Shown here: positions 69 to 62,825 of the stretch, piece after piece
Numbering within the stretch: position 1 is the stretch's first letter
Layout: every line of letters begins with the position of its first letter
Source: Neoechinorhynchus agilis
Taxonomy: Eukaryota > Animalia > Acanthocephala
NCBI GenBank assembly: GCA_051530055.1
Contig: CM121342.1
Span: forward strand, 6,447,489-6,511,488
Direction of reading: 5' to 3'
DNA length: 64,000 bases
Position numbers and translations under genes: made by a program
The notes under the pieces: model-generated
The model's input: only the letters and a program-made list of their open reading frames with translations
Told to the model about the DNA's origin: nothing
Databases searched by the model: none

Positions 69-290
69 AAAGTCTTCATCCGCGGTAAATAACTTTTCTT
101 TTAAAATTAAAGACGTTCTGAGAATCTCGTCGTCTTCCATGATCAGTTTGTTTTTTAACAAACTAATAAACTGATCATGGAAGCCAACTAGATTCTCAGA
201 ACTTTTTTTAATCGAAAAAAAGGGTTATTTACACTTTAATCGAAAAAAAGGGTTATTTACACGGTTCAAGACTTCAAAATAACACCTCTA
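69..290. repeat. Fold-back (imperfect palindrome) at the left end of satellite A
   Basis: CTTCCATGATCAGTTT (134-149) pairs with AAACTGATCATGGAAG (168-183), and GTTCTGAGAATCT pairs with AGATTCTCAGAAC (190-202). The left arm 69-127 is an inverted, diverged part of the satellite unit. Confidence 0.85.
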
Positions 291-8434: not shown

Positions 8435-8705
8435 TCGTCCCTATAAAATAATCAATAAAAATTTAAATTAATTTATTAAAAAATGATTGTTTTCGAAGGC
8501 GCAACCAAAATTTCTTTAATTTTTACGCCATAAACATGAAAACGCACAAGAAATGCCTAAAAAACAGAAACTTTTAAGAATCTTTTTTTGAATGTAAAGT
8601 AGCATTTAATAAATTAGTTTGAATTGTGGTAAATGTGCCTCATTAGATTTCATCAAAACAATTCTCGCTTTTAATATCATATCGACTTTTAAAAGTTCTC
8701 TATGA

Positions 8706-11315: not shown

Positions 11316-11459
11316 ACACCTTTAAAATGAGTTTGTGACTTTTATTTTTCTTTAGATGGGCACGGAAAACCCGGAATGGCCTAACCTACTGATTCATATG
11401 GGTGTATTTCTCTTTCTTTTTTTCTGAATCATTAGACTAAACCGTTCAAACAAAGTCTT

Positions 11460-18590: not shown

Positions 18591-19825
18591 TCTGTAGATA
18601 AATCTCCAAAAATGTCTTATTATCCCTAACAACCAGACCAGAGCAACTAATCTTAGAACTTCAACACATTTATCAAATTTTAGAGAGTTGCCGAAGGTTT
18701 CGAAAAATAGCAAGTTATTAGGACTTAAGGTCCCGTTATTTGGATACCCGATTTGCGAGTTGGGAAGGATTCGAAATATGTTTTATAAAGCTAAACTCAT
18801 AATGAAAAAAGGGAAACGTTTAAGTCTAAATGATAAAATGGTGATAAATATAATTAAAACCCTTATTTTTGGTACAATTTGTTTTTTATAAGAGGCAGAC
18901 CACCAGAACAACGACTAATGATCTTTTTTAAAATCCTCCCGATTGTTAAAAAGATCAAGTTCTTATCAGCGGAATCAAATAAGGACTTGAATAAAGATCT
19001 GGCGATTTTATTTTTATCCAAAATATGGTTTTATAGCTGTAAATATAAATTGGCAAAACTTGTTTTTAATACACATAATCAAATGTGCCTGCAACTAATG
19101 AAAGCAAAGTTTGATTCAACTAATTTTAAATAAATTATAATCCGAGACTTTCTTAAGAAAAACCTTGATCATTTTTTAGAATCATTTGTATTCCCCTTCA
19201 CAAACGGTGAGTTACCTTAACAAATCTTAGGACCATTTATAGGAAATGGAAATATTCGAAACCAAACACGGCTAAATGCGATTATTCTTTGTTTTGATAA
19301 TTGCGCAGAGACACAAAAGAGTGCGCAATAACGACTAAATCTCAAACAATTGTAGAAAAGGATTGTAATGGAGGTTCTTAGAAAATGAATGATTGTAACC
19401 AGTATGAGTTAATAAATAAATAAATTTTTGAACAACGCATTGAACGTTTGATAATACAACAAAAATCATTTCCACATGAAGTTAATTGAAAAAAGATGAA
19501 TTTAATTCTGAGAGAAATTCCAATTCTTAAATGCGTCGACTTTTTTAAGAATCCTGCAAAGTCAGCAATTCTTAAGCATTTTAACTTTTTGTTTTGTCTT
19601 CTACTTATCATAGAGATTTTGAAACCAAAATGAATTTGAAAAAGTTGAAAAACTGCACAAATCATATCGAAAAGACGTGAAAAATCAACGATTATATAAA
19701 GACATAAATCGAAGTTGAATAAAATGCACGGAAATAAACTTAAAGTACAGAAACTAAGCGACGTTCACAAAATAAATTTAAGCTTATGAACAACATTTCG
19801 CGACATGTTTACAAAACTCCTTGGG

Positions 19826-19832
19826 TATAAAA
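19826..19832 (+). promoter_or_regulatory. TATA box of secreted repeat gene copy 1 (identical at 26749-26755 and 36868-36874)
   Basis: GGGTATAAAAGGGGG lies 63 bp upstream of the ATG in all three paralogues. AATAAA lies about 20 bp after each stop (e.g. 20771-20776). Confidence 0.65.
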
Positions 19833-19888
19833 GGGGGCAGATCGAGTCGATTAATCATTGATCATCAATTGCAAACTCGTGAACTCAA

Positions 19889-20752
19889 ATGAACTTCAAC
19901 GCTCTCTTTTTTGCTTGCGCTTTAATCGCCATTGCATCCTGCTACGGAGACTGCTGTTCTCCAGCAGAATGTAGACAAGAACCAATCTGCGCTGCTGAAC
20001 CAGCTAAAAATATCGTTAAAACATTCAAAGTTGTGGTCCAACGAGCACCAAACAGTCCCGAAATGGCAGCTTGTAAACCGGAACCTGCCCATAGAATGAA
20101 AGCGCAAAAAGCACCAATCTGTGAACCAGCACAATTCGACGAACCGGAACCAGTTTGTCAAAGTTGTTCTCAAAGGACTTCAGCGTTCAGTCCGAAGTCA
20201 GTTTGTGAACCGAAGGAAGTCTGCGAATCGGAACCAGTTTATAAAAGATATTCTCAAAGGACATCAGGGTTTAGGCAGCAGCCAGTTTGTCAACCGGAGT
20301 CAGTTTGTGAGCCAGCACAATTCTATGAACCGCAGGAAGTTTGTCAACCGGAGTCAGTTTGTGAGCCAGCACAATTCTATGAACCGGAGTCAGTTTGTCA
20401 ACCGGAGTCAGTTTGTGAGCCAGCACAATTCTATGAACCGCAGGAAGTTTGTGAACCGGAGTCAGTTCGTGAGCCATCGGTGAAAAGCTCGTCCTCGGCG
20501 CCAGCCGTTGCGATTCCAGCGATTCGAATAACATTCATCCAACCAAAATCGGAGATCGTGCAAAGTTCAATCCAGGAAAGTCGCGAGGACACTGTACGGA
20601 AACCGATTTGTCAGGAAAGAAGTTCCAAAATCTGTTCAAGCGGCCAAAAGCAGGGGAACGTCATTCGTAAACCAATTTCGGCTCCCTTACGTTCTTGTTA
20701 CAAGAACGCTGCTGAAAACGTTTGCAATAAGTGCAACGCTTGCCGTTGTTGA
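19889..20752 (+). CDS. Secreted Cys-rich hexapeptide-repeat protein, paralogue 1 (287 aa)
   Basis: Intact ATG-TGA single-exon ORF with signal-peptide-like MNFNALFFACALIAIASCYG, repeats EPAQFY/EPQEVC/QPESVC, Cys-rich termini, a TATA box and a polyA signal. Confidence 0.85.
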   Translation: MNFNALFFACALIAIASCYGDCCSPAECRQEPICAAEPAKNIVKTFKVVVQRAPNSPEMAACKPEPAHRMKAQKAPICEPAQFDEPEPVCQSCSQRTSAFSPKSVCEPKEVCESEPVYKRYSQRTSGFRQQPVCQPESVCEPAQFYEPQEVCQPESVCEPAQFYEPESVCQPESVCEPAQFYEPQEVCEPESVREPSVKSSSSAPAVAIPAIRITFIQPKSEIVQSSIQESREDTVRKPICQERSSKICSSGQKQGNVIRKPISAPLRSCYKNAAENVCNKCNACRC

Positions 20753-21574
20753 TCTTAGAATTTTAGACTTAATAAAACTTAGTTGGCAAGTCGTGAATGT
20801 CGGGTACGCAAGTAAAATGCTATTTTTGATCTGTTTCCTTTCCAATTTTACCGAAGAACGATAAATGTTTAAAAAATTTCAATTGTGCATAATTTTCATG
20901 ATCTAATTTTCAAAAAGATGCCATTATTTTTATCCGCGACAAATTTAGATTGCAGTTTCTACTTCTTAAACTGGGCTTTTTAAAAATTAACGTTTTTCCG
21001 GCAACATTCAGCTTCTACAACCACGTTCTCCGCGGAGCTCGGATATTGCATAATTTTGAAGCGTAAACTGCTGAAATGTTCCCTAATTCCTACCTTTCAA
21101 ATTCCGAATAAGTCCAAACGCTAATTTATAAACGTCTTGTGATTGGCTCTTTACATTTAATAATTTAAACTTTCGTTTAAAAATTGCAATAATGGATCAC
21201 ACCTTTTTTTACACGTTTGCTAAACGAAAAACAAATCGGTTCTATAAAAAGGTTCACTTCTAATAATTTTCTTTTATACTTTATTTTAATACTCTGATGG
21301 CGTCAATCATTTGAATAACATTTTAGTTTGAAAAAAGAAAATGCTGCAGCTATGGATTGCTCGTTATATTGTCAAAAATGTTGAAGTTCGATGAACAAAT
21401 CTTGAGAAAAGTTGCTTTTACGGCATTGAAAGCGACGACTAAAGTTAATGGCATTCTTCTTTATGATGTGGAAAACTGTCCATTCCGCTTAAAATCCGCC
21501 GCCTAAAGAAAGTGTTTTTTGAATGGTTTTTGTGATATCCACTATGCAATCACAATTGTCCGCCAAATTAGAGC

Positions 21575-22320
21575 TTCTCTCCATCCTTGGCTGTCGCTAT
21601 CACGTTAGCAGCAATGCCTCGTTGTACTGCGAGCGAGATATTTTGCCGCAGGAATACACCTGCTCGTTCGTCGCCTGTGGTTTCTCTGAATTTCCTTGAG
21701 AGATCTGGGCCCTTGCTAAATCCCTATATTTTCGTACCTTCCTCCCTTCCGCTGCACTGGCGGCACCTCCATCGATTTCGAGAAAGTAGGAAATGTTGCT
21801 TACTGCGATGGACGTTGCGTCCTAGAGAAGGCGTTCGCCCTCCCGCAACGGAAAGGTCGGAATTCAGTCAGGTCGACGACCGTCTAGTCGACAAAGATTT
21901 CCGGGTTCCAAGATGTTGGGGAAGTTCGCCGTTCTCAACGCCCGAGAAATTGATCTCAGAATGGCATGAGAACCTTCCTCCTGACTTTCGGCAAACGAGA
22001 CCGTGTCGACCGAAAGCATCAACCAAAGACCCACATCGACAGCGGCGTGTATATCGGGAGACCAAGCCTTAAGGACACTGCGATTCTCGTTACCTCATCA
22101 GTGAGAAGAGTTCCCACAGATGCCAAAGCAACAGCCTCCAACCACGCCCCCGATTCTCGTGAACAATCGAGCTCGGACGACCCCATCGCGAGAACCTGAA
22201 AGTAGAGAGCTGTGAGCTCTCGCAGCGGGAGGTCCGTCCCAGCTCGACTGTCTGAGGCCATTCACGGGAACATGGTTAACGCCTGTCCGCTGGCACCATT
22301 CTTCAACTGCCACCACAAAG
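21575..22320 (-). mobile_element. 3' fragment of a CRE-like (RLE-type) non-LTR retrotransposon
   Basis: QSSWDGP...RARL, ESGAWLEA, CRCGSLVDAFGRHGLVCRKSGGRFS (CCHC), EPGNLCRLDGRRPD (RLE) and AGVFLRQNISLAVQRG. Confidence 0.8.
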
Positions 22321-22356
22321 TCTTAGTCAAGACAAAACTTTTTCCTCAGAATTTTC

Positions 22357-22733
22357 GTCGCTTGTAAACGTCGCTTAGTTTCTGTACTTTAAGTTTATTT
22401 CCGTGCATTTTATTTAACTTCGATTTATGGCTTTATATAATCGTTGATTTTTCACGTCTTTACGGTATGATTTGTGCAGTTTTTCAACTTTTTCAAATTC
22501 ATTTTGGTTTCAAAGTCTTTATGATAAGTAGAAGATAAAACAAAAAGTTAAAATGCTTAAGGTTTGCTGACTTTGTAGGAATCCTAAAAAAAGTCGAGAC
22601 ATTTAATAATTATAATTTTTCTCGGATTTAAATGCATCTTTTTTCAATCAACTTCATGTAGAAATTATTTTTGTGGTATTTTCAAACGTTCAATGCGTTG
22701 TTCACATAGTCGCCCATTCAATCGCTGTTCAAC
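22357..22733 (-). repeat. Inverted copy of the ~370-bp upstream region of the secreted gene, containing the uninterrupted (empty) LINE target site
   Basis: The reverse complement matches 19430-19767 and 36473-36810 and extends to GAACAGCGATTGAATGGGCGACTATGTGAACAACGCATTGAACGTTTG with no insert. Confidence 0.88.
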
Positions 22734-23169
22734 ATAAACAGCAGTCAGCAGTCCTAGACGTCAAATAAAATCACATGATTTGAAGCCTCGCGATCCTCCT
22801 GATAAACGCAAAACTAATCCGATGGTCAATGACAAGATTAGTTTGGAGGGTCTCAGGGATGGGAATGTTGGTATTCCTCCCAATTTGGTTTTGAGTAAGT
22901 CCTGCCCCCCGACAGTTTTTCCTAAATAATCATTGGGTTTCCCGCCCCCACATGCAAGTTGTTTTTGGTTTTAGACATGGAAGGGTTAAACTCTTCCAAT
23001 GTTCCAAGGTATGAAAACATACAAAGTTTAACTAAGGTTTCAAATAAAAATGACTCCTCATTCATTCGAGATTTTCATCCAACGGAAAATGGGTGTTTTT
23101 TTATTTCTTACCTCAAATTTTCGATGCCTTGCGTCTTCGTCAGGGAGCTTCCCTTCGGTGATCTGAAAA

Positions 23170-24660
23170 GGATCAGAGGAGGGCAACGCTGTCCTCTGCC
23201 TCGCTGTGTCTGCTCGCAACCAATCCAACAACTCCCCCACGATTAACGCCTCGGCAATCGAGAGATCCACAGGATCGGATGCCCTGTGTATCACCTCAAT
23301 CTGGAAGGCTGGCACCAACGTGAGAGGTAGCGAAATGGGTAGCTCATTGTGCCGATCGGTATGATTGCCCGTCCTTGGATAGCCGGCACAACATCCTATA
23401 TACCACGCATATTGATTGGCAAGACGGTCTGAGGAATTGTCCTTCTTCTTTCCTTGAAGGGCTGCAATGGGAGCACATCAGACATGACCTCGGACAATCA
23501 TTTTGATCCTCGTGGTGCTCGGTCTGCGTCAAAATCTGTCCAAGTGATGGCTCTGTCCTGTGGACGACTCGCGTTTTTAACTTGCATTGCCGCAACGCTT
23601 TCTTGACTTCGGTCGTGAATCTTTCATCGACGAATGGCACTTTTGGAACTGGTAGACTTTCCTCGGCTAGTCTACTTCGTCGATCGAATCTTTTCTCTTT
23701 TTTCATCGCACCAGCCGTCAACCTGGTAATGTCCTTGCTAGAATACCCATTACCAGCGAACAGTTGCTTAATCCGTTTATCCGCCTCGTGTTTTCCATGC
23801 TCCGTCGAAGCACATATCCTTGCTGTTTTCCACATTTCTGTGAAGATAGATTGTTTGATTATCCAGAGATGGTGCAACTCACAGAGGTTCAGGAACGGTA
23901 GATAGTCACTTGGTTTATCCCGAGTAACCTTGATGCGACCTGCTAAATCCATTGAATTTAACTGATCTTCGATTGTGTCGACCTCACTATTCTCGTGGTA
24001 GGTTAGCAGCACATCATCCACATATCGGAGATGGATTTGATTCGACGAAAGATGTGGAAAACTGTGCTGCCCCTCTAAGCCATCGAGGAATAGATTAGCC
24101 AAGACTGTTACCCATCGAGAGACCACGGACTTGACGATACAGTTGATTTCGGAATCGAAAAAGGTTGTATTGTAGGACCAGGCGTGTGAGCATCAACACA
24201 TCAGAAGGTTCCATTCCGAACAGGTTTGTCCGACGTTCTTGCAACTTCCTGGCCAATGTATCAATTGCGGCTTCAGTGTCGACATTCGTATATAAGCTTT
24301 GGAAATCGAAGGACATCACTTTAGATCATTGCAGGATATCTTGCCTCGATTCCAATGTTTCTGTTAGCCCGCGCGTATTTTTAATGTATGCTGGTCCATC
24401 TCCAACCAAAGGAGCCAACATCTTGGCTAGCAGTTTGGATATCCTATATGCTGGTCCATTTATTGTAGATACAATTGGTCTGCATTTGAGCCGGTCTCCT
24501 CGCAATAAGACCTCCGGCATCTTGTGGGTCTTTACCATCGCATATAGAACTGGGGTACCTAAGGGCCCTTGGGTAAATTCGTGCATTTTCGTAAGGTTCC
24601 TACTCGCGACTATCCTGCGAGAGGGTGTTGGGAAAAGAGGCTTTCCATAATATTACTCCT
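23170..24660 (-). mobile_element. Decayed Penelope-like retroelement (RT plus GIY-YIG)
   Basis: LYAMVKTHK, RPIVSTINGP, SFDFQSLYTNV, YRQVRGLSMGN, LRYVDD, LPFLNL, F..NGYS and VPFV, followed by a Cys-rich linker and a VVYRMLC GIY-YIG start. Several frameshifts. Confidence 0.88.
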
Positions 24661-24799
24661 CATTCAATTCTAAAGTCTCAGTTGATATCCACCAGGAGTT
24701 TATGCCGAAACTCCCGAGCTCCGTATTTAAAAGGAAAATTTAAAAAATGCCTCTCTAAACGTGGTGTTTAAACATTACCTTACTAATTGGTTATTATTA

Positions 24800-25400
24800 A
24801 AAAAAATGGGAAAGTGTGAAGATTTATCAGATCAAAAAATATTTATCAACAAAATGGGCTCACTTAATCGCATTCGTGAGCTTTAAAGGGCGTTTTTTCT
24901 AAAAAAAGATTGTCAGGTGGATTTTGCGGATATTTCGCGTAAAGCTCCGCTGCTTGTTTTCAATATTCCAAATATGAATCATAAGAACCTTTCTATGCTT
25001 CAATAAAAATTCCAAGTTAAAACTATTAAATTTCTCTTCAATAATCCGGATAAACTCCCTTATGCTCTACTAGTAAAAGGTTCATCTAACATAATTGATA
25101 AATTAAAAGGCACTTCGACGGGTTTTCTGGCCCATTGGATAAACTTTTCTTTCCCTGGAAAGAACTCGATTTATGATTATATTTTGACACCTTTTTCACA
25201 ATTCAAAAGTGATCCAAAATGTGGCACCTGTGCCGAAAATCATCTTTCTTCATCATACCAAAGCAGTAGAATATGTTGCTGCAATTGTGGTGGAAATCAT
25301 AAAGCCTTTAAAAGGTTCTGCCCGCAGCAGTAAAATACTTCAAATCATATGAAAACTCTAACGGTTATAAATCCAATGCCTGGGTAAACAGAAGCAACCC
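24800..25400 (+). mobile_element. Relic of a LINE gag/ORF1 (zinc knuckles)
   Basis: Hand translation at ~25205-25330 gives KSDPKCGTCAENHLSSSYQSSRICCCNCGGNHKAFKRFCP (CX2CX3H and CX2CX3HX6C knuckles). Confidence 0.6.
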
Positions 25401-25874
25401 TTCGCGCTCCTCTTCTCACAATACTTCATTTAGCCAAGCATATGATAGACAGTTTTTGGAATCCTTAGTGGGTCAAATTCGCTCCCTGCAAGACTAAGGC
25501 AAAGTTCTTTACAAAAAAATGAAGAAAAAGACGTAATAATAAATTCGCTAAAAAAATCACTAGACAAGAACGGTGTCTCGGTAAGCTGTGAGTCGGAAGA
25601 GATTGGGATGGTTGATAATATGGAGGATATCGCAATGGAAGGTCCGGTGGAAGCGATGACTATGGATCAATCTCCTTCCTTTAATCCTTATAAAAGAAAA
25701 ACGGAAAATAAGTTAGACAATAATGATTCTAAAATCTTTATAAGGGAAGAGAACAACTCTTCGCCTTTTCATTATGATGAATAATAGAAGGATTTTATCC
25801 TATAATATTTAGAGAGGTAGTACAATCTCGAATCATATATTAAATCAAATCAATATCCTGGATGCAGATGTACT

Positions 25875-26475
25875 CTGTTTCCAGGAATTGGGAATTTCCA
25901 ACAATTAGATTTACGAAGGAGTTATCGAGTAGACTCCAGACCAAGACAGGAAAGTGGAGACTCTTGGTGCGCTCGGTAGCTCGGCACTTCGATTTACGAG
26001 GAAGCAATCTAGTAGACTCCAGACCAAGACAGGAAAGTAGAGACTCTTGGTGCGCTCCGTAGCTCGGCACTTCGATTTACGAGGAAGCAATCTAGTAGAC
26101 TCCAGACCAAGACAGGAAAGTAGAGAATCTTGGTGCGCTCCGTAGCTCGGCATTTAGATTTACGAAGGAGTTATCGAGTAGACTCCAGATCTTGGTGCGC
26201 TCCGTAGCTCGGCATTTAGATTTACGAAGGAGTTATCGAGTAGACTCCAGGCCAAGAAAGTGGAGACTTTTGGGGCGCTCGGTAGCTCGGCACTTAGATT
26301 TACGAGGAAGCAATCTAGTAGACTCCAGACCAAGAAAGTGGAGACTCTCTTGGCTCCAGGCCAAGACAGGAAATACAAGGACTGGTGCCTTCCTGCGGCA
26401 AACCATTGGTCTCGTGATCCAAAGAGGAAAAGCAGCGAGTGTGGTCACGACCACTGAGCGTGGACGGCAGTGATT
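25875..26475 (+). mobile_element. CRE-like 3' end with ~5 copies of the 83-bp repeat
   Basis: Repeats of GAGACTCTTGGTGCGCTCGGTAGCTCGGCAC...AGTAGACTCCAG followed by TGAFLRQTIGLVIQRGKAASV. Same family as 59880-61720. Confidence 0.85.
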
Positions 26476-26811
26476 GTTTAAACGTTTTGTTGTTGTGTGA
26501 AAATGAAAAAATATGATTCGTTTAAAAAAATCATTTATTCAAATGGTTCGTATAAATTGCTTGCTATATTTTTAAAAGAGTCAAGATCAATTTTAATAGT
26601 GTGAATAAAAAGCCTGAGACGTGTCTTAGATGTATAATAAAATAAACTGTAAAAAAAGAAAATTAAAGTACAGAAACTAAGCGACGTTCACAAAATAAAT
26701 TTAAGCTTATGAACAACATTTCGCGACATGTTTACAAAACTCCTTGGGTATAAAAGGGGGCAGATCGAGTCGATTAATCATTGATCATCAATTGCAAACT
26801 CGTGAACTCAA

Positions 26812-27783
26812 ATGAACTTCAACGCTCTCTTTTTTGCTTGCGCTTTAATCGCCATTGCATCCTGCTACGGAGACTGCTGTTCTCCAGCAGAATGTAGACA
26901 AAAACCAATCTGCGCTGATGAACCAGCTAAAAATATCGTTAAAACATTCAAAGTTGTGGTCCAACGAGCACCAAACAGTCCCGAAATGGCAGCTTGTAAA
27001 CCGGAACCTGCCCATAGAATGAAAGCGCAAAAAGCACCAATCTGTGAACCAGCACAATTCGACGAACCGGAACCAGTTTGTCAAAGTTGTTCTCAAAGGA
27101 CTTCAGCGTTCAGTCCGAAGTCAGTTTGTGAACCGAAGGAAGTCTGCGAATCGGAACCAGTTTATAAAAGATATTCTCAAAGGACATCAGGGTTTAGGCA
27201 GCAGCCAGTTTGTCAACCGGAGTCAGTTTGTGAGCCAGCACAATTCTATGAACCGCAGGAAGTTTGTCAACCGGAGTCAGTTTGTGAGCCAGCACAATTC
27301 TATGAACCGCAGGAAGTTTGTCAACCGGAGTCAGTTTGTGAGCCAGCACAATTCTATGAACCGGAGTCAGTTTGTCAACCGGAGTCAGTTTGTGAGCCAG
27401 CACAATTCTATGAACAGAAGTCAGTTTGTCAACCGGAGTCAGTTTGTGAGCCAGCACAATTCTATGAACCGGAGTCAGTTTGTCAACCGGAGTCAGTTCG
27501 TGAGCCATCGGTGAAAAGCTCGTCCTCGGCGCCAGCCGTTGCGATTCCAGCGATTCGAATAACATTCATCCAACCAAAATCGGAGATCGTGCAAAGTTCA
27601 ATCCAGGAAAGTCGCGAGGACACTGTACGGAAACCGATTTGTCAGGAAAGAAGTTCCAAAATCTGTTCAAGCGGCCAAAAGCAGGGGAACGTCATTCGTA
27701 AACCAATTTCGGCTCCCTTACGTTCTTGTTACAAGAACGCTGCTGAAAACGTTTGCAATAAGTGCAACGCTTGCCGTTGTTGA
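26812..27783 (+). CDS. Secreted Cys-rich hexapeptide-repeat protein, paralogue 2 (323 aa)
   Basis: Near-identical to paralogue 1 but with 36 more aa (six extra hexapeptides). It sits in a near-identical duplication, ~26663-29035 versus ~19739-22003. Confidence 0.85.
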   Translation: MNFNALFFACALIAIASCYGDCCSPAECRQKPICADEPAKNIVKTFKVVVQRAPNSPEMAACKPEPAHRMKAQKAPICEPAQFDEPEPVCQSCSQRTSAFSPKSVCEPKEVCESEPVYKRYSQRTSGFRQQPVCQPESVCEPAQFYEPQEVCQPESVCEPAQFYEPQEVCQPESVCEPAQFYEPESVCQPESVCEPAQFYEQKSVCQPESVCEPAQFYEPESVCQPESVREPSVKSSSSAPAVAIPAIRITFIQPKSEIVQSSIQESREDTVRKPICQERSSKICSSGQKQGNVIRKPISAPLRSCYKNAAENVCNKCNACRC

Positions 27784-28604
27784 TCTTAGAATTTTAGACT
27801 TAATAAAACTTAGTTGGCAAGTCGTGAATGTCGGGTACGCAAGTAAAATGCTATTTTTGATCTGTTTCCTTTCCAATTTTACCGAAGAACGATAAATGTT
27901 TAAAAAATTTCAATTGTGCATAATTTTCATGATCTAATTTTCAAAAAGATGCCATTATTTTTATCCGCGACAAATTTAGATTGCAGTTTCTACTTCTTAA
28001 ACTGGGCTTTTTAAAAATTAACGTTTTTCCGGCAACATTCAGCTTCTACAACCACGTTCTCCGCGGAGCTCGGATATTGCATAATTTTGAAGCGTAAACT
28101 GCTGAAATGTTCCCTAATTCCTACCTTTCAAATTTCGAATAAGTCCAAACGCTAATTTATAAACGTCTTGTGATTGGCTCTTTACATTTAATAATTTAAA
28201 CTTTCGTTTAAAAATTGCAATAATGGATCACACCTTTTTTTTACACGTTTGCTAAACGAAAAACAAATCGGTTCTATAAAAAGGTTCACTTCTAATAATT
28301 TTCTTTTATACTTTATTTTAATACTCTGATGGCGTCAATCATTTGAATAACATTTTAGTTTGAAAAAAGAAAATGCTGCAGCTATGGATTGCTCGTTATA
28401 TTGTCAAAAATGTTGAAGTTCGATGAACAAATCTTGAGAAAAGTTGCTTTTACGGCATTGAAAGCGACGACTAAAGTTAATGGCATTCTTCTTTATGATG
28501 TGGAAAACTGTCCATTCCGCTTAAAATCCGCCGCCTAAAGAAAGTGTTTTTTGAATGGTTTTTGTGATATCCACTATGCAATCACAATTGTCCGCCAAAT
28601 TAGA

Positions 28605-30840
28605 GCTTCTCTCCTTCCTTGGCTGTCGCTATCACGTTAGCAGCAATGCCTCGTTGTACTGCGAGCGAGATATTTTGCCGCAGGAATACACCTGCTCGTT
28701 CGTCGCCTGTGGTTTCTCTGAATTTCCTTGAGAGATCTGGGCCCTTGCTAATTCCCTATATTTTCGTACCTTCCTCCCTTCCGCTGCACTGGCGGCACCT
28801 CCATCGATTTCGAGAAAGTAGGAAATGTTGCTTACTGCGATGGACGTTGCGTCCTAGAGAAGGCGTTCGCCCTCCCGCAACGGAAAGGTCGGAATTCAGT
28901 CAGGTCGACGACCGTCTAGTCGACAAAGATTTCCGGGTTCCAAGATGTTGGGGAAGTTCGCCGTTCTCAACGCCCGAGAAATTGATCTCAGAATGGCATG
29001 AGAACCTTCCTCCTGACTTTCGGCAAACGAGACCTTGTCGCCCGAAAGCATCAACCAAAGACCCACATCGAAAGCGATGGGCGAGGTCTTAAGGACACTG
29101 CGATCCTCGTTACCTCATCAGTAAGAAGAGTTCCCACTGATGCCAGAGGAACAGCCTCCAACCACGCCCCAGATTCTCTTGTTGAAACTGCCAACAGTCC
29201 AGCTCGGACGACCCCATCGCGAGAACCGGAAAGTAGAGGGCTGCCCATCTTCGAGGTCTCCCTAATCAGCGTCTCCAAATCGCGCAGTACAACGGAGGGA
29301 TCACCTCCCAGCGTAGCGTCAACCAAGTACCAAGCATTGAAGCTGGAATGGAGAGAGCGTGCTATTGGATTTACTGTTAGGGAGAATGCGATTGGACCGA
29401 GGGGATCTCCTTGCTGCACTCCTATTTCGGACCAAATGAGGAGGTCTTCGAAAAGTAAAGGAGTCGCCGCCCCGTAAGCATTGAGAAAATACTGGAAGGC
29501 TTCTGGTGCGTGATCCCTAATTGCGCAGAACATGATTTCTCTATTGAGAGAGTTAAAGGCATTCTGAAAATCACACTTAAGAATCACGCACGGCTCTGAG
29601 CTTCTCGTAGCAAAGTTTCGGAGCGAGTGGACAATAGCTTCCGCCCCGCAAGATGTGCAGCAGCCCAGTTGGACTGGACGAAGTTGCTGCCCGGTTTTCT
29701 CTGTAATACGTTTGCAGAGAATTTTTCCTGCAAGTCGGCGTATCGTCGAAGATACGGCGATGGGACGAATCCCACCTTCTTTTTTTGTGAGGGCATATAA
29801 TGATGCTCCGAAAAATAGGTCTTTTCCAACGCGATTCAAATCCTCTCCAGTCAGGCGGTCGACTATTCGAGAAAGCGCACTTCCTAGAGAGAGCTGCTTC
29901 ACCAGTTGAAAAGGACACCATGTCCTTTAGGTGCTGAGGCCTTAGTCCGTCAAGCCCGTGACCCGAACCATTTGCAAAAGTTGAGATGGCCTTTTTAACT
30001 CTGAAATTTGAGTGGGCGTCCTGTCTTGTATGGGAGGAGATGGAATTTCAAAACTTCCGCTACTGCATGGGTGCTTTGACCGGAGTATTTGCTGTGTCCC
30101 GTTGTCTCCTTGTGCAAAACTGTTGGAGGATGACAATAACCGAACAGCCCCTCGAACATCTCCGTCCGCAAGCTTCGAAGAGACACGCTCAGTCAGTGAT
30201 CGTTTTGAAAAACGGCAGCGAAACTCTTCCTTCGTGCGTCCCTTACGAACCTCGCGGAGAATCCTTTCAAAATTGTTAAATATTTGTTCAAAGGAGGCGA
30301 ACTTTTCCTTGATTATTGATGTCAAAGACACCTTAGAATCATCACTGGTGCAAAGGACTAAGCGCGGGGCGCACAGTTCGTTTGGAAGCAATCGTTGACC
30401 AATCCCGTAAATGCTTTGGCGACCTGATATCGTGTGCCCTTTGGGATCCGTTTCGGGACGTTCCTGGGCAGAAACCGCACGATGTCAGGTATCGAAATAG
30501 AATCAGTGGTGATCTGAGAGGTCCCAGGCATAAACAGATCGGTTGATTGTGGTGGAGAACCAGATCCGCTACAGCGGAGATTCCGGGGACGATGGGCAAA
30601 CAAAAACCCCAAATTGGTTAATTGAAAAGACTTATCGCAAACCGGACACACCAGTAGAAACGCGTAGGAGCCCGGCAACGTTGGTCTTCTCAGGTTGAGC
30701 GCGGTTTGCGTCAGTGATTTGATGAACAGAATTTCGGCCTGGTGTCCCGATAGCGTTGGGCGTTTCCTCTTTCTTTTCACTTGGCTCATTTTGGGCGGGC
30801 AAGTTTCCGTCTTCATATTGTTGTCTAGCATCCAGGTTCC
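28605..30840 (-). mobile_element. CRE-like RLE non-LTR retrotransposon, near full length, internally deleted and frameshifted
   Basis: N-terminal CPVCDK zinc finger and PKRIPKG; RT KKEGGIRPIAV, QLG, GAEAIVH, DFQNAFNS, GVQQGDPLGP and WYLVD; then a jump to RAGLLAVSTRESGAWL, the RLE and FLRQNISLAVQRG. Confidence 0.85.
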
Positions 30841-31049
30841 GAGCGAGGAGGCGGCATCGGTGTCGTCGGCTACTCTTCGTTCAAATTAAGTTTACCTATT
30901 GAACCTTCTACGAATCTGATTTGTTGCTTTAAGCTCAAAGACCTATAAAATAACTTCTATCGAAGCCCAGATGGCACAATTTGATACGTTTTAAATTTAG
31001 CTGAGACACTAAGAGTTTAATAGGCTATTAAAGTGGGCCAAAATCAATG

Positions 31050-32980
31050 TTAGACTTTACAAATCACAGCCATTCGATCCACAGTGCCTACAATTAAATA
31101 TTTGCCGTCTTTGCTAATTTCACAAGACAAAGCAGCTCTTGGCAAATCGAGTTGGAAAATCTGGCATAATCCTTTAGTCTTCCAACCTTTTACTGCTCCA
31201 TCAGACCCACATGAAACGAAATATCGACCTGTCGGGGAATAGGCAACCGACAAAGCACAACCTTCATGTCGTCCAATTTTGTGCCGTTTTCCCTCGATGG
31301 CGATCGATACAACATCAACGGTTCCATCGGCTAAGCAGGCAACAAAGTGATCATTCTTTGGTCCGATCTGGACGCCGAGGACATCGCTGTTGAACGAATA
31401 ATCTTTAACAGGTCGATCGAAACGGCGTTCGTCCCATTCAAGAACGAGTTGATCCAGGCCGCCAGTAAAGACACTGTAGTTGTTTATTGAAGTATCCACA
31501 CAAGTAGCTCCGTTCTGGTGAACTGAGATCTCATAAAGTGTCTTTTGCTCTGCAATGTTCCATACTTCGAGTTTACCACGTTCATACAATGAGAATCCTC
31601 GACGTGAATCAACGGAAACAGCAAGTGAAGCGCATGCTGGTGAGTTGGTTGTATAAAATCCAATGGTTCGAGTCGAAGGGCCCTTTAGTTCAACTTGCGC
31701 AATTTTGGAATCACATCCACCGATTAACATGGCCGAAGAACAATTAAACATCTTTGCCGCTTTTATTAGGACGCTTTCACCAAGACAATCAATAGTGGCA
31801 ACGTATTCTCCGGTTCTTAGTGTCGGATTTTGATCGCTTAAAATTGACGACAATGACCAAAGTTTCAATGAAGGTCCACCCAGCGAATAGGCGTAATCGA
31901 TAGACAGATTTACCGAACGCAATTGGACAACAAAAACAACAACTAAAATTTACAAAAGCATTTAAAAACAATTATAAATGACACATTGGAATTTGTGCAC
32001 CGGTATCCATTTTTAAAAATGAAAAATATTTTACGAAAAAATATCACGTTTAACCCGAAGAAACATTAGCAATGGGGGCGGAGAAATGGGTTTAAAAATC
32101 ATAAAAATACAATAAAATATTCGGTTAATTTTTTTGTAAAGAAAAAAGTGCATTCAGCGAACCTACCGTTTAGAGCAGGTGAGAAAGCAACGGCATTCAC
32201 GCATCTCTCATGATTGAGATTGATTATCTTAACGAGTTTCTTAACATCACAAGTTTGATCCTTTTGTGGATGCAGGCAGTCGGTAGTCGATTTGACAGAG
32301 TAATCCAAAGCTAATCCGCCATCTTCTTTATTATCCGCTTCTACACTTTTTCCTTCCTCCCGAACTTGTCTCAATTGATCGACGTAACTGAAAAACCGTT
32401 GGCTCGGTACAAAATCAGATTTGGTTTGTTCAATATTCGGTGCACTTTCACACTTGATTTTGCTACCGAGTTTACGTCCTTGATTACGCTGAGGTCGCAA
32501 TTGATTAACAAAATGTTCATTCGAAGGAAACCTTGCACGTTGATCGGTGCGGATTGTTGATGGAATATTTGAAGATCCTTGATTGCTGGAGGTCAGTTGA
32601 CCACTATTTGGTGCCGACGGATTATTACATGAAGTGTTATGTTGCATTGCAATTAAATTGTCTCGTCTTGAATGAATTAAGTCTGTATCGAGGACACGTT
32701 TACACAAATCAACTTCCTTTTCTACTTGATCTATCATTTCATTCGGCAAATTGGACTTTATATCTTCACAAAGTTTAAGAAGATTGCTCGTAGTTGCTCG
32801 CCTAATCACCAGCGCTTGTGAAAGCTTATCCGAAACACCTTTATAAGTAAAGACGTCTTTAGCCATCCTTTCATTTTTGGATCGTAAATCATTGCAATAC
32901 TGAGACAAAATAATCATTTCTCGGCGAACCTGGTCAATGGTATCGTTCAAAGTTTTAAAAAAATCCATTTTTGAAAACAT
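31050..32980 (-). CDS. gro: Divergent Groucho/TLE-family WD40 co-repressor (two segments, probable intron ~31943-32160)
   Basis: N-terminal Q-domain-like FKTLNDTIDQVRREM. WD40 motifs align by eye with TLE: HQNGATCVD...VFTGGLDQLVLEWD (HTDGASCID...WTGGLDNTVRSWD), RHEGCALSVAYSPTGRYFVSCGSD (HESCVLSL...GKWFVSTGKD), and LSCEISKDGKYLIVGT (LSCDIS.DDKYIVTG). The exact splice junction is uncertain. Confidence 0.8.
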
Positions 32981-33030
32981 TTAATTTTTGAACAGCGATT
33001 GAATGGACGACTATGCGAACAACGCATTGA

Positions 33031-36000
33031 CGACCATTGGAGTTATGTGTGCGAAACAGGCTGTTGTGCGGCGGAGGGTGGCGAACGAGAATTCCCGTGC
33101 CTCCGGACATTCGGAATCAACTTCTCAGCGATCAAAACAGTAAGCACTTCGTGGAGGTGCCTTCAAAAAGATGGCCCAATACGATAAGAATCGAAGCAAA
33201 TCCAATACAACCCAGAGAAGAGCTACACAGACGTTATCTGGCTCCGTGGCTCAAATCCTTTAAGGATGATATCCATCGTATTTCATCCATCAGCTATTTC
33301 GGAGGAATATTGAAAATCAGGTTTATAGCAGCGGATTTTATGAAGGCTTTTCTGGCCTTCACCAAGGAAAACTGCAACCTTGCAGGTGTGGCAATTTCGA
33401 ACACAAGTTATGAATCAACCTTTATCGTTTCTGGGCTATCTCCAGATATTGATGATGCAGATAAGATAACGTTCGAGGAAAAATTCGGAGTCAAATTGCT
33501 CTTTTTCCTGAAGTCATTAAGAACGGGGAAGTTTATTCCCAAAGCTATTGTTAAAGCAGCGGTCGAACGGAGGGACGCACTTTGCACTGAGCGATCCTTC
33601 TTTTAAATCAATGGAGGTTAAATTTACTTCAAACGGGATTTCGCGTTACGACGACTATTACTTTCCTCGGTGCAGTGGGTGTCAATGTTGGGGACATTGG
33701 GAGCAGAGGTGCCCGTCCAAGGTCACGCGATGCGCTTTTTGTGGCCAAGACCACCACAGTACCAAATTTGAGAAAAAGAAAAGCCACTGCTCAAACTGCG
33801 ATCGAGATGGACATTGTGCGTTCTCGACGAATTGTGAAGCATTTAAGGAATATGTTGGGTGGGCGAGACTGCTTGGATCCAAGGGAAATAATTCATCCGA
33901 CAAGTTGGAATACGACAAAGGACAAACCCATAAGAGGATCTGCCACAACCAATACAACCATAGAAACATACCCAAGGCAACAACTGGGTACATCCAAAGA
34001 TGTTAATAATCTACGAACGACTTATGATGACACCTTGGAAAAGAAGTTGCCTGATTTCTCCGCTAAAATCCTCGACATGGTCGATCTACGAATCACCGCG
34101 GCCATTCAGGGTCTTGAGAGGAGACTGTCTGCCCAGTTAAACGGTCTCATCGAAACTCTCTCGACAGAATTCATAGATATTCAGATCGCGACCGGGGTAG
34201 CTCCAGCACCCTGCAAACGCAGTCGAGCACTGGTTTCAAGTAGCAACGGTGTAGACGATGTGAATATGTGCGAGGCCGAGGAGTTCGTAACATCATAAGC
34301 GACTGGCGGGGTCCAAAATCTCATCAAGGGTAGGTCTCAATGGAATTGAGAATTGCGCAGTGGAACGCAGGCGGGCTTCTGGGTACGATTTTTCTTTGCA
34401 GATGACCCATCAAGGTCTATATTCTATCAATCCAAAGGGGTTCCTCAAGGCTCACCTTTATCACCCATACTTTTTTGCTTGGCAACTCAATTTTTGATTA
34501 AAAATTGTAAGATTTGTCGTAGCGTCACTATGCACGCCGATGACCTTACTGTAGTTATCAAAGAGTTAAATTATTTGAGAGCACGTGCGAAACTGGCTGC
34601 CGTGCTGAACTTTTTAAAATCTCACCTACCTCATATGGGTCTCTCTTTGAATCAAGACGAAATTTTTAATCAAATCTAAATCTCGAGTGGGTAAGAAGAA
34701 CATCCGCGATTATATCAAGGATTTCTTTTGGGTTAGATTTCGACCCTGCTTATAAGAAACTTGATATTTTAGGTTATACTTTCACTAATAACCTTTCGCC
34801 CGCCTCCGATATACACAAGATGGAAAAACTTTTAAGGACAGCCAGAGTTAAGGCGAGACGCGCCGCTCGTATTAGGCTCAGCGCCAAGATATGCAAAGTA
34901 ATATGGTGCTCTTGGGCTATTTCAGGCCTAGTTTTTTATTCCAGAGGAAGGCCTCCAGAACAACGCCTAAAATTCCGCTGTGTATTCTTGAAAACCCTGT
35001 CGAGACTACCCTTTGAGTGGATTTCCTCAGCAGACTGGGCCAATAAATCCATGCAGTGGATCGGATTATGACTTCCAAAAACGGATAGTAACTAGTATAG
35101 AATGTTGCTTCAGTTATTCAGCGACAACGGTCGATCCATGGTTTGCCTTTGCGAATAATTTTTTTAATATTTTTGGGTTAGATTTCGACCCTGCTTATAA
35201 GAAGCTTGATATTTTAGGTTATACTTTCACTAATAACCTTTCGCCCGCCTCCGATATACACAAGATGAAAAAACTTTTAAAGACAGCCAGAGTTAAGGCG
35301 AGACGGCCGCTCGTATTAGGCTTAGCGCCAAGATATGCAAAGTAATATGGTGCTCTTGGGCTATTTCAGGCCTAGTTTTTTATTCCAGAGGAAGGCCTCC
35401 AGAACAACGCCTAAAATTCCGCTGTGTATTCTTGAAAATCCTGTCGAGACTACCCTTTGAGTGGATTTCCTCAGCAGACTGGGCCAATAAATCCATGCAG
35501 TGGATCGGATTATGACTTCCAAAAACGGATAGTAACTATAGAATGTTGCTTCAGTTATTCAGCGACAGCGTTCGATCCATGGTTTGCCTTTGCGAATAAT
35601 TTTTTTAATGGATTTTTGGGTTAGATTTCGACCCTGCTTATAAGAAGCTTGATATTTTAGGTTATACTTTCACTAATAACCTTCGCCCGCCTCCGATATA
35701 CACAAGATGAAAAAACTTTTAAAGACAGCCAGAGTTAAGGCGAGACGGCCGCTCGTATTGGCTAGCGCCAAGATATGCAAAGTAATATGGTGCTCTTGGG
35801 CTATTTCAGGCCTAGTTTTTTATTCCAGAGGAAGGCCTCCAGAACAACGCCTAAAATTCCGCTGTGTATTCTTGAAAATCCTGTCGAGACTACCCTTTGA
35901 GTGGATTTCCTCAGCAGACTGGGCCAAAAATCCATGCAGTGGATCGGATTATGACTTCCAAAAACGGATAGTAACTAGTAGAATGTTGCTTCAGTTATTC

Positions 36001-36472
36001 AGCGACAGCGTCGATCCATGTTTGCCTTTGGAATAATTTTTTTAATATTTTTGGGTTAGATTTCACCCGCTTATAAAAGCTTGATATTTTAGGTTATACT
36101 TTCACTAATAACCTTCGCCCGCCTCCGATATACACAAGATGAAAAAACTTTTAAAGACAGCCAGAGTTAAGGCGAGACGGCCGCTCGTATTGGCTAGCGC
36201 CAAGATATGCAAAGTAATATGGTGCTCTTGGGCTATTTCAGGCCTAGTTTTTTATTCCAGAGGAAGGCCTCCAGAACAACGCCTAAAATTCCGCTGTGTA
36301 TTCTTGAAAATCCTGTCGAGATCCCTTTGAGTGATTTCCTCAGCAGACTGGGCCAAAAATCCATGCAGTGGATCGGATTTGACTCAAAAACGGATATAAC
36401 TATAGAATGTTGCTTGGTTATTCAGCGACAACGTTCGATCCATGGTTTGCCTTTGACGAATAAATTTTTTTT
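33031..36472 (+). mobile_element. APE-clade-like non-LTR retrotransposon (LINE-B), internally deleted, flanked by a 13-14-bp target-site duplication
   Basis: gag with three knuckles CSGCQCWGHWEQRC, CAFCGQDH and CSNCDRDGHCAFSTNC; RT palm KGVPQGSPLSPILF...HADD; LDILGYTF; RGRPPEQRL shared with LINE-A. Flanks are GAACAACGCATTGA (33017-33030) and GAAAACGCATTGA (36473-36485). Confidence 0.82.
34722..36472 (+). repeat. Tandem amplification (~4 copies, ~440 bp) of the 3' terminal part of LINE-B
   Basis: GGGTTAGATTTCGACCCTGCTTATAAG recurs at ~34730, 35175, 35617 and 36053, and the MKKLLKTARVKARR ORFs repeat. Confidence 0.92.
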
Positions 36473-36930
36473 GAAAACGCATTGAACGTTTGATAATACC
36501 ACAAAAATAATTTCTACATGAAGTTGATTGAAAAAAGATGCATTTAAATCTGAGAGAAATTCCAATTCTTAAATGCGTCGACTTTTTTAAGAATCCTGCA
36601 AAGTCAGCAATTCTTAAGCATTTTAACTTTTTGTTTTGTCTTCTACTTATCATAGAGATTTTGAAACCAAAATGAATTTGAAAAAGTTGAAAAACTGCAC
36701 AAATCATATCGAAAAGACGTGAAAAATCAACGATTATATAAAGCCATAAATCGAAGTTAAATAAAATGCACGGAAATAAACTTAAAGTACAGAAACTAAG
36801 CGGCGTTTACAAAATAAATTTAAGCTTATGAACAACATTTCGCGACATGTTTACAAAACTCCTTGGGTATAAAAGGGGGCAGATCGAGTCGATTAATAAT
36901 TGATCATCAATTGCAAACTCGTGAACTCAA

Positions 36931-38910
36931 ATGAACTTCAACGCTCTCTTTTTTGCTTCCGCTTTAATCGCCATTGCATCCTGCTACGGAGACTGCTGTT
37001 CTCCAGCAGAATGTAGACAAAAACCAATCTGCGCTGATGAACCAGCTAAAAACATCATCGGAACAATAAACGTTGTAGTCAAATTAAAACCAAACCGTCC
37101 CGAAATGGCAGCTTGTAAACCGGAACCTGCCCATAGAATGAAAGCGCAAAATGCACCAGTCTGCGAACCAGCACAATTCGACGAATCGGAGCCAGTTTAT
37201 AAAAGATGTTCTCAAAGGACATCAAGGTTTAGGCAGCAGCCAGCCTACGAACCGGATCCAGTATACGATCGGGAGGAAATCTGCGAACCAGCAAAATTCG
37301 ACGAATCGGAGCCAGTTTATAAAAGATGTTCTCAAAGGACATCAAGGTTTAGGCAGCAGCCAGCCTACGAACCGGATCCAGTATATGATCGGGAGGAAAT
37401 CTGCGAACCAGCAAAATTCGACGAATCGGAGCCAGTGTACGATACGGAGGAAGTCTGCGAACCAGCGCAATTTGACGAACCGGATCCAGTATACGATCCG
37501 GAGGAAGTCTACGAACCGGAGCAAATATACGATCCCGAGGACGCCTGCGAACCAGCACAATTCGACGAACCGGAGCCAGTTTATAAAAGATGTTCTCAAA
37601 GGACATCAAGGTTTAGGCAGCAGCCAGCCTACGAACCGGATCCAGTATACGATCGGGAGGAAATCTGCGAACCAGCAAAATTCGACGAATCGGAGCCAGT
37701 TTATAAAAGATGTTCTCAAAGGACATCAAGGTTTAGGCAGCAGCCAGCCTACGAACCGGATCCAGTATATGATCGGGAGGAAATCTGCGAACCAGCAAAA
37801 TTCGACGAATCGGAGCCAGTTTATAAAAGATGTTCTCAAAGGACATCAAGGTTTAGGCAGCAGCCAGCCTACGAACCGGATCCAGTATATGATCGGGAGG
37901 AAATCTGCGAACCAGCAAAATTCGACGAATCGGAGCCAGTGTACGATACGGAGGAAGTCTGCGAACCAGCGCAATTTGACGAACCGGATCCAGTATACGA
38001 TCCGGAGGAAGTCTACGAACCGGAGCAAATATACGATCCCGAGGACGCCTGCGAACCAGCACAATTCGACGAACCGGAGCCAGTTTATAAAAGATGTTCT
38101 CAAAGGACATCAAGATTTAGGCAGCAGCCAGCCTACGAACCGGATCCAGTATATGATCGGGAGGAAATCTGCGAACCAGCAAAATTCGACGAATCGGAGC
38201 CAGTGTACGATACGGAGGAAGTCTGCGAACCAGCGCAATTTGACGAACCGGATCCAGTATACGATCCGGAGGAAGTCTACGAACCGGCACAATTTGACGA
38301 ACCGGAGCAAATATACGATCCCGAGGACGCCTGCGAACCAGCACAATTCGACGAATCGGAGCAAGTTTGTCAAAGTTGTTCTCAAAGGACTTCAGCATTC
38401 AGTATGAAGTCAGTTTGTGAACCGAAGGAAGTCTGCGAATCGGAACCAGTTTATAAAAGATATTCTCAAAGGACATCAGGGTTTAGGCAGCAGCCAGTTT
38501 TTCAACCGGAATCAGTTTGTGAGCCAGCACAATTCTATGAACAGAAGTCAGTTTGTGAACCGGAACCAGTTTGCGAACAAGAACAATTCTATGAACCGCA
38601 GGAAGTTTGTGAACCGGAGTCAGTTCGTGAGCCATCGGTGAAAAGCTCGTCCTCGGCGCCAGCCGTTGCGATTCCAGCGATTCGAATAACATTCATCCAA
38701 CCAAAATCGGAGATCGTGCAAAGTTCAATCCAGGAAAGTCGCGAGGACACTGTACGGAAACCGATTTGTCAGGAAAGAAGTTCCAAAATCTGTTCAAGCG
38801 GCCAAAAGCAGGGGAACGTCATTCGTAAACCAATTTCGGCTCCCTTACGTTCTTGTTACAAGAACGCTGCTGAAAACGTTTGCAATAAGTGCAACGCTTG
38901 CCGTTGTTGA
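36931..38910 (+). CDS. Secreted Cys/Tyr/Asp/Glu-rich hexapeptide-repeat protein, paralogue 3 (659 aa)
   Basis: Intact ORF with the same signal peptide and the same C-terminal ~90 aa as paralogues 1 and 2. It has an expanded central array of 40-aa (A) and 48-aa (B) modules. Confidence 0.88.
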   Translation: MNFNALFFASALIAIASCYGDCCSPAECRQKPICADEPAKNIIGTINVVVKLKPNRPEMAACKPEPAHRMKAQNAPVCEPAQFDESEPVYKRCSQRTSRFRQQPAYEPDPVYDREEICEPAKFDESEPVYKRCSQRTSRFRQQPAYEPDPVYDREEICEPAKFDESEPVYDTEEVCEPAQFDEPDPVYDPEEVYEPEQIYDPEDACEPAQFDEPEPVYKRCSQRTSRFRQQPAYEPDPVYDREEICEPAKFDESEPVYKRCSQRTSRFRQQPAYEPDPVYDREEICEPAKFDESEPVYKRCSQRTSRFRQQPAYEPDPVYDREEICEPAKFDESEPVYDTEEVCEPAQFDEPDPVYDPEEVYEPEQIYDPEDACEPAQFDEPEPVYKRCSQRTSRFRQQPAYEPDPVYDREEICEPAKFDESEPVYDTEEVCEPAQFDEPDPVYDPEEVYEPAQFDEPEQIYDPEDACEPAQFDESEQVCQSCSQRTSAFSMKSVCEPKEVCESEPVYKRYSQRTSGFRQQPVFQPESVCEPAQFYEQKSVCEPEPVCEQEQFYEPQEVCEPESVREPSVKSSSSAPAVAIPAIRITFIQPKSEIVQSSIQESREDTVRKPICQERSSKICSSGQKQGNVIRKPISAPLRSCYKNAAENVCNKCNACRC

Positions 38911-39261
38911 TCTTAGAATTTTAGACTTAATAAAACTTAGTTGGCAAGTCGTGAATGTCGGGTACGCAAGTAAAATGCTATTTTTGATCTGTTTCTTTTT
39001 ATCACAAATTTGATCGGCGTTCATTTTTTCCTTTGCTATTAATTTTCATTTTTGCAAATTTAAGCGATATGTAACTTTTAGTTTTAGATTATTTAATAAC
39101 AGATTTCTGCCTAAAAATATTTTTAAGGGTCGATATGTGATGACTTCACCCGGTAAAGAATATTTTAAAGGCGTTTCGAATACCGTCGTGTTCATAATCA
39201 CTTAAACGTCTATATTAACAAGGTTTTTTACCGGTTGAAGACTTCTAAATGACACCTTGGC

Positions 39262-62758: not shown

Positions 62759-62825
62759 GTATGCATCTTTCTGGTTAATTCTTTTCAAAGGGTGACTTGG
62801 GGATTTTTGATAGATTTAAAAGGAT

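Follow-up and report, generated by a model that had tools for sequence, protein, structure and literature searches.

A family of predicted secreted, cysteine-rich repeat proteins in the acanthocephalan Neoechinorhynchus agilis: candidate components of a cross-linked extracellular material

Introduction

What do three long, closely similar and uninterrupted open reading frames (ORFs) in the genome of the acanthocephalan Neoechinorhynchus agilis encode, and what would the worm use their products for? They are located on the forward strand of a 64,000-nt stretch (hereafter, the window) of contig 2 (GenBank CM121342.1; positions 6447489–6511488) in the 46.2-Mb N. agilis assembly of 102 contigs (GCA_051530055.1), and specify proteins of 287, 323 and 659 amino acids (genes 1, 2 and 3). 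A first-pass annotation, made from the sequence alone, had described them as an unrecognised family of secreted, intronless hexapeptide-repeat proteins, kept open by selection and perhaps serving as structural material. Next to nothing is known molecularly of acanthocephalan materials, e.g., the egg envelopes that survive in the environment or the cement cap that plays its part in sperm competition. Here, we describe the three genes, their paralogues and the sequences they share, and weigh the roles their products may have. They belong to a real, previously undescribed orphan family of an ordinary general type, the repetitive, cross-linkable secreted protein, though one with unusually clean anatomy and regulation.

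Gene Structure and Protein Anatomy

The features reported earlier for the three ORFs, i.e., a signal-peptide-like leader, a TATA box, an AATAAA signal, Cys-rich ends and a repeat core, were all found in place. Each product starts with a 20-residue leader, MNFNALFFA[C/S]ALIAIASCYG, directly followed by DCCSPAEC. The leader's 13-residue hydrophobic core (residues 5–17) has a mean Kyte–Doolittle value of 2.3–2.5, Cys occupies position −3 and Gly position −1, and there is no second hydrophobic segment: outside the leader, the maximum for a 19-residue Kyte–Doolittle window is 1.0. With its hydrophobic core, positions −3 and −1 filled by small residues and the rest of the chain free of membrane segments, the leader is called a cleavable-looking signal peptide, and the proteins are predicted to be secreted via the classical pathway. 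It is kept in all eight intact copies of the family (see below). The window proteins carry no N-glycosylation sequon.

In an alignment of the three proteins, the first ~77 and the last 93 residues are free of gaps and the length differences are confined to the centre. All three end in ...CNKCNACRC (tail pattern C-x2-C-x2-C-x-C), and their C-terminal domains are identical even in DNA. The mature chains consist of 9–11% Cys and 11–13% each of Pro and Glu, with 1–9 Gly residues (~1–3%) and no Trp. The gene 3 product, the only Tyr-rich member of the family, counts 35 Tyr and 39 Cys and has a net charge of −70; many of its sixth-position Cys are replaced by Tyr and many Gln/Ser by Asp, and 13 of the 35 Tyr occur in acidic, non-basic contexts.

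The core sets Pro and Cys/Tyr at regular intervals. The hexapeptide period described in the first-pass annotation is real, and Tandem Repeats Finder (TRF) weakly detects it as an 18-nt base period (55–64% matches), but the well-kept units are longer (54, 84, 120 and 264 nt) and basic 16-residue spacers (KR[CY]SQRTS.F..) break up the hexads and shift the register. The 54-nt unit, EPAQFY-EP(E/Q)(S/E)VC-QPESVC, shows 94–96% matches, and its copy number (3.6 in gene 1 versus 5.7 in gene 2) exactly accounts for the 36-residue difference between these two products. TRF also finds well-conserved units of 84 nt and, for gene 3, units of a higher order (120, 264 and 384 nt). Across the arrays, indels amount to 0 to 6% (none in the 54-, 84- and 120-nt arrays), and the frame is open throughout: the three length variants arise from the copy number of whole repeat units. 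A second frame is open across the arrays at 27044–27514 and 37151–38407 (forward strand), giving ORFs of 156 and 418 amino acids that read NRSQFV....

Gene 1 with its flank (19732–22212) is 97–98% identical to gene 2 with its flank (26655–29243), and both units are 92–97% identical to that of gene 3. The window genes are DNA-level segmental duplicates and not retrocopies; a retrogene origin was rejected, as one promoter, located 5′ of the transcript, is common to all copies.

Genomic Copies and Shared Regulatory Sequences

With a six-frame search of the genome, we identified nine family loci on the three big contigs, plus one decayed copy (Table 1). They form two subfamilies, ~50% identical to one another, across which three Cys in a 38-residue N-terminal domain and six Cys in the 93-residue C-terminal domain are invariant. 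The copy on contig 1 that hops between frames retains the promoter (with one mismatch) and the 3′ untranslated region (3′UTR) motif described below; it is either a young pseudogene or carries a set of long-read indel errors. The GenBank gene set includes six of the nine loci as hypothetical proteins, while the genes for the 659- and 393-residue products are outside the public protein set. A look-up by exact sequence traced the proteins to the genome record and to no other.

In the window, a TATA box (TATAAAAGG) is present at 19826, 26749 and 36868, in each case 63 nt 5′ of the ATG; the TATA box sequence in the three window promoters is GGGTATAAAAGG. The core promoter motif GGGTATAAARGNNGGCAGATCG occurs exactly nine times in the assembly, at family loci only, and not once in the reversed control. 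The AATAAA signals at 20771, 27802 and 38929 are each located 19 nt 3′ of the stop codon, within a 33-nt 3′UTR motif that, likewise, has exactly nine genomic copies (at most three mismatches), confined to the family loci and absent from the reversed controls. The nine single-exon copies are predicted to be near-identically regulated from a strong TATA core promoter. Such a layout, nine loci with a private promoter and 3′UTR motif, is what one would expect of genes for a product made in bulk by a single cell type.

Further upstream, genes 1 and 3 share a 342-bp block. Genome-wide, it was found only eight times (83–100% identity), always next to a family gene, and it is therefore part of the family's upstream region. 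We considered that the block is the end of a transposon, as it recurs in inverted orientation downstream of gene 1, and rejected this, given its confinement to the neighbourhood of family genes. This inverted copy lies 1.6 kb 3′ of gene 1 and may be what is left of a gene copy that ran in the opposite direction and has since been lost. The upstream region also includes two TGTTTAC-type sites, forkhead-like by sequence.

Selective Constraint

The earlier proposal that selection keeps the ORFs open, while the transposable elements around them are decayed, was supported independently by substitution rates and by conserved non-coding sequence. For the non-repetitive N- and C-terminal parts, which are open in eight copies, the ratio of non-synonymous to synonymous substitution rates (dN/dS) is 0.26–0.58. 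Between the subfamilies, dS is ~0.4 and dN ~0.22 (Fisher p = 0.02), and the comparison of the two divergent contig 1 genes yields p = 0.0004, which points to purifying selection on the terminal domains. Identity between subfamilies is 80–87% from −75 to −1 and 84–86% over the 50 nt that follow the stop codon, against ~70% at synonymous sites and 36–53% for the flanks further out. Promoter and UTR segments are, thus, conserved above the neutral expectation, an argument for real, transcribed genes. The neighbouring retroelements are indeed fragmentary, e.g., the RVT_1 fragment at 29051–29902.

It is highly improbable that chance has kept the ORFs open because the repeat is poor in stops, or that they belong to a recently dead family. 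That the second frame, too, is open over the repeats (156- and 418-amino-acid ORFs), that a contig 1 copy has a shifted frame and that a copy on contig 2 carries stop codons would suit such an explanation, but it does not account for the open non-repetitive ends and purifying selection in eight copies, nor for promoter and UTR conservation in excess of the synonymous rate; the frameshifted copy itself shows how decay looks in this family.

Database Searches and Structure Prediction

Searches for relatives support the view that the family is one not described before: no homologue was found in Pfam, in PDB or outside the species. With hmmscan (E ≤ 1), the three window proteins matched only QueC in Pfam-A, a hit to the Cys-rich tail that, at 15–17 bits, stayed below the family's cut-off (22); at the gathering score, there was no match to the Keratin_B2, Cornifin, trematode eggshell synthesis, chorion or metallothionein families. 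Amongst PDB sequences, the best hit for a profile of the C-terminal domain was ribosomal protein S29 (E-value 0.16), a coincidence of Cys motifs. A word search of 5.8 billion proteins with the 323-residue protein as the query recovered the paralogues and P0005 only, the latter a compositional EP-repeat match; the 659-residue query recovered nothing. HMMER, run exhaustively over 1.84 billion representatives with the C-terminal domain profile and no length limit, returned the family and P0008 only. P0008 was rejected as a relative: it is an unrelated eight-fold repeat protein that sums weak scores. The ESM Atlas offered no credible neighbour (the top score was 0.82, and recognition stayed well short of the useful range), a scan of JGI metagenomes yielded no relative, and in the literature we found the genome paper and general biology only, and no description of these proteins. 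The family appears restricted to N. agilis, in the sense that the searchable collections, whose coverage of other acanthocephalan proteomes is unverified, hold no relative.

AlphaFold2 reached a mean predicted local distance difference test (pLDDT) score of 35.6 on the seven-member alignment and of 41.7 on the 393-residue subfamily-B protein alone. The sole helix modelled spans residues 3–16, i.e., the leader; there are no strand elements and no score exceeds 70. The solenoid fold raised in the first-pass annotation, thus, found no backing in either run, neither of which has a confident element beyond the signal helix, although with so shallow an alignment this is weak negative evidence. The same models weakly suggest that the proteins look intrinsically disordered until cross-linked.

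Genomic Surroundings

The window is unusually satellite-rich. An 83-bp satellite at 25899–26348, a few hundred bases upstream of gene 2, is 80–87% identical to the large array at 59870–61600, and four copies of a 432-bp unit (34726–36471; 96% matches) adjoin the upstream block of gene 3. Further tandem arrays are found at 233–5867, 8705–11316, 46894–47810 and 62823–64000, with periods of ~255, 132, 116 and 217 bp, respectively. Between genes 2 and 3, a WD40 beta-propeller gene is located on the reverse strand (31050–32980), consisting of a 290-amino-acid ORF with WD40 matches and a 293-amino-acid upstream ORF, probably two exons. Fragments of non-LTR (long terminal repeat) retrotransposons are interspersed with the family genes (29051–29902, reverse strand, RVT_1; 23344–24126, reverse strand; 33037–34298, forward strand) and include ORFs with CCHC-like knuckles and no Pfam match. 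Elsewhere on contig 2, ~1.2 Mb upstream of the window, the arrays at 5219276–5229091 and 5437596–5439285 give many weak matches (15–22% identity) to the repeat core; they are probably another, unrelated repetitive coding region.

Table 1. Genes, copies and shared sequence elements of the family. Positions are those of the window unless a contig is named.
Feature	Position	Strand	Remarks
Gene 1	19889–20752	+	287-residue predicted secreted repeat protein; 3.6 copies of the 54-nt unit; GenBank hypothetical protein P0002
Gene 2	26812–27783	+	323-residue protein; 5.7 copies of the 54-nt unit; GenBank hypothetical protein P0001
Gene 3	36931–38910	+	659-residue acidic, Tyr-rich variant; 120-, 264- and 384-nt higher-order repeats; not in public protein set
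Gene 1 core promoter	19823–19844	+	GGGTATAAAAGGGGGCAGATCG; TATA box at 19826; motif with nine genomic copies
Gene 2 core promoter	26746–26767	+	Only 53 bp of the 342-bp upstream block left
Gene 3 core promoter	36865–36886	+	Promoter motif search
Gene 1 3′UTR motif	20756–20788	+	33 nt; holds AATAAA at 20771–20776
Gene 2 3′UTR motif	27787–27819	+	With AATAAA; 3′UTR motif search
Gene 3 3′UTR motif	38914–38946	+	With AATAAA; 3′UTR motif search
Gene 1 upstream block	19429–19770	+	342 bp (about −460 to −120); belongs to the unit duplicated in the family
Gene 3 upstream block	36472–36812	+	97% identity to 19429–19770
Inverted, gene-less upstream block	22362–22704	−	92% identity to 19429–19770; no adjoining promoter motif
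Three family loci	contig 2 (window)		287, 323 and 659 residues
Three family loci	contig 3		259, 259 and 247 residues
Two divergent family loci	contig 1		297 and 393 residues; ~50% identical; 48-nt/16-residue unit VCEPEPVCQQCSQRTA
Frame-hopping family copy	contig 1, 731099–732684	−	Switches several times between the coding and the second open frame
Decayed family remnant	near end of contig 2		Stop codons present

Discussion

The family is probably a cross-linked structural secretion of some kind. The genes would encode matrix proteins that are produced in bulk, secreted and intrinsically disordered, and, after export, covalent cross-links would lock these into an insoluble extracellular material. 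The Cys-rich ends could act as inter-chain disulfide "clasps" and the Cys in the repeats as lateral cross-links, while further links, of dityrosine, could be made by a haem peroxidase in the long variant, where Tyr often replaces Cys amid acidic residues. Two adult acanthocephalan sources provide such material in quantity: the embryos, with their several envelopes, and the male cement gland. Fast evolution and change in repeat number favour a reproductive protein, be it male or female. The leading candidate for the material would be a disulfide-rich egg envelope laid around each acanthor, and we propose a role as egg envelope component tentatively, as a possible one. Older histochemistry describes a keratin-like, disulfide-based stabilisation of acanthocephalan shells. 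The number of shelled eggs that females produce is very large (PMC7310846), and a passage in PMC6960238 gives chitin, sclerotin and/or keratin as the substance of helminth egg coats, citing Peters et al. on acanthocephalan eggshells.

From the spacing of Cys and Tyr, disulfide, dityrosine or 3,4-dihydroxyphenylalanine (DOPA) cross-links had been proposed at the outset. Candidate enzymes for the former two are present: we found two loci for animal haem peroxidase and three matches to Erv1/ALR-type sulfhydryl oxidase in the genome. DOPA/quinone tanning, on the other hand, is weakened because the assembly gave no match to the tyrosinase domain (PF00264), in a search that left the control genomes blank too and, hence, had no positive control. 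Disulfide and dityrosine routes are plausible, DOPA/quinone tanning less so.

Several observations weigh against an egg envelope of cross-linked chains. GenBank lists six of the nine genes, which is no proof of transcription, and nothing links the haem peroxidases to the family proteins. The transglutaminase core has only a weak match in the genome (26.6 bits). No homologue was seen in another acanthocephalan or in a rotifer, which one would not quite expect of a component central to the shell, unless the databases lack those proteomes. Moreover, fast evolution and variation in repeat number fit male reproductive proteins at least as well.

This last point leads to the male cement gland, the product of which seals the female after mating (PMC12690905). 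The family could form the bulk of the copulatory cap that closes the female tract, hardened by disulfide or Gln–Lys cross-links, an alternative that we consider somewhat unlikely. Its secreted, repetitive, Cys/Gln/Lys-rich and apparently disordered design resembles that of the copulatory-plug proteins of rodents, flies and nematodes, and rapid evolution (dN/dS up to 0.58), variable repeat and copy number and the lack of an outside orthologue are typical for male reproductive proteins. A 23-kDa cement protein is known from Pomphorhynchus. Cement is a costly male trait in N. agilis, and sulfur-compound metabolism is enriched amongst its male-biased genes (PMC12690905). The weakness of the transglutaminase-core match weighs against the cement alternative as well. 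A repeat protein that is secreted and cross-linkable would, by its general features, also suit another matrix of the worm, such as the tegument surface coat, hook or proboscis material, or ligament and envelope layers. Such a matrix is an unlikely destination, as nine co-regulated copies point to a single, highly productive cell type; the intracytoplasmic lamina of Syndermata, for its part, is intracellular and would need no signal peptide.

The proteins might also bind rather than build. Acanthocephalans hyper-accumulate lead and cadmium, and the composition of the chains makes metal binding, like a structural role, plausible. As a polyanionic, thiol-rich metal sink, the family could draw on its C-x2-C-x2-C-x-C tail, its 9–11% Cys and the net charge of −70 in the 659-residue form; alternatively, the long form, with 13 of its 35 Tyr in acidic, non-basic contexts, could be tyrosine-sulfated and bind host gut proteins. 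We regard binding as the primary role as quite unlikely: there is no match to metallothionein or another metal-binding family in Pfam, Cys spaced by six, with Pro, matches no known chelating motif, the Cys of secreted proteins are as a rule oxidised, and metal affinity could be a mere side effect of a shell protein. Acanthocephalan egg shells have been proposed as sites of metal sequestration (PMC5428946), and a shell protein with many thiols and carboxylates is an attractive candidate link to metal accumulation. The combined idea, in which the family underlies the "keratin-like" egg shell at the molecular level and its polyanionic, thiol-rich chains sequester lead and cadmium, is a long shot; if true, it would link an orphan family to metal hyper-accumulation and explain the higher burdens of females.

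Returning to the cross-linked secretion that we favour, a nine-copy, species-restricted family with a private promoter is a concrete candidate for egg envelope or cement cap material and offers a handle on gland- or embryo-specific transcription in Syndermata. If the family does form the shell, fish aquaculture might gain a marker or target specific to the parasite, and the study of metal sequestration a lead. The family also shows cleanly how length variants form by gain and loss of units while the ends, promoter and UTRs stay fixed.

The likeness to known systems is one of design only because every sequence membership test failed. The rodent SVS2/semenogelins and the Caenorhabditis elegans mucin PLG-1 are secreted, repetitive and fast-evolving, vary in repeat number and form a post-mating plug; such plug proteins are transglutaminase-cross-linked or mucins and have no sequence relation to the family. 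Schistosome p14/p48, Fasciola vitelline proteins and insect chorion proteins are multi-copy, highly expressed, repetitive, secreted and covalently hardened, in insect chorion with peroxidase-made dityrosine. Eggshell and chorion proteins are, however, Gly/Tyr- or DOPA-rich, those of flatworms being tanned by tyrosinase, whereas the N. agilis family is low in Gly and dominated by Cys. SPRR/cornifin proteins are cytosolic, joined by transglutaminase, built on 8–9-residue repeats and without a match via Pfam Cornifin, but, as in our family, a head and a tail flank a Pro-rich short repeat containing E-P-C, and they are cross-linked into an insoluble envelope. Finally, the high-sulfur keratin-associated proteins of mammals (KRTAPs) lack a signal peptide, act inside cornifying cells and use a C-C-x-P-x pentad, without a sequence match to the family; nevertheless, they too are encoded by small, single-exon, tandem-clustered genes with Cys-rich, Pro-containing short repeats and form length variants by gain or loss of repeat units, and their role is that of a disulfide-cross-linked matrix.

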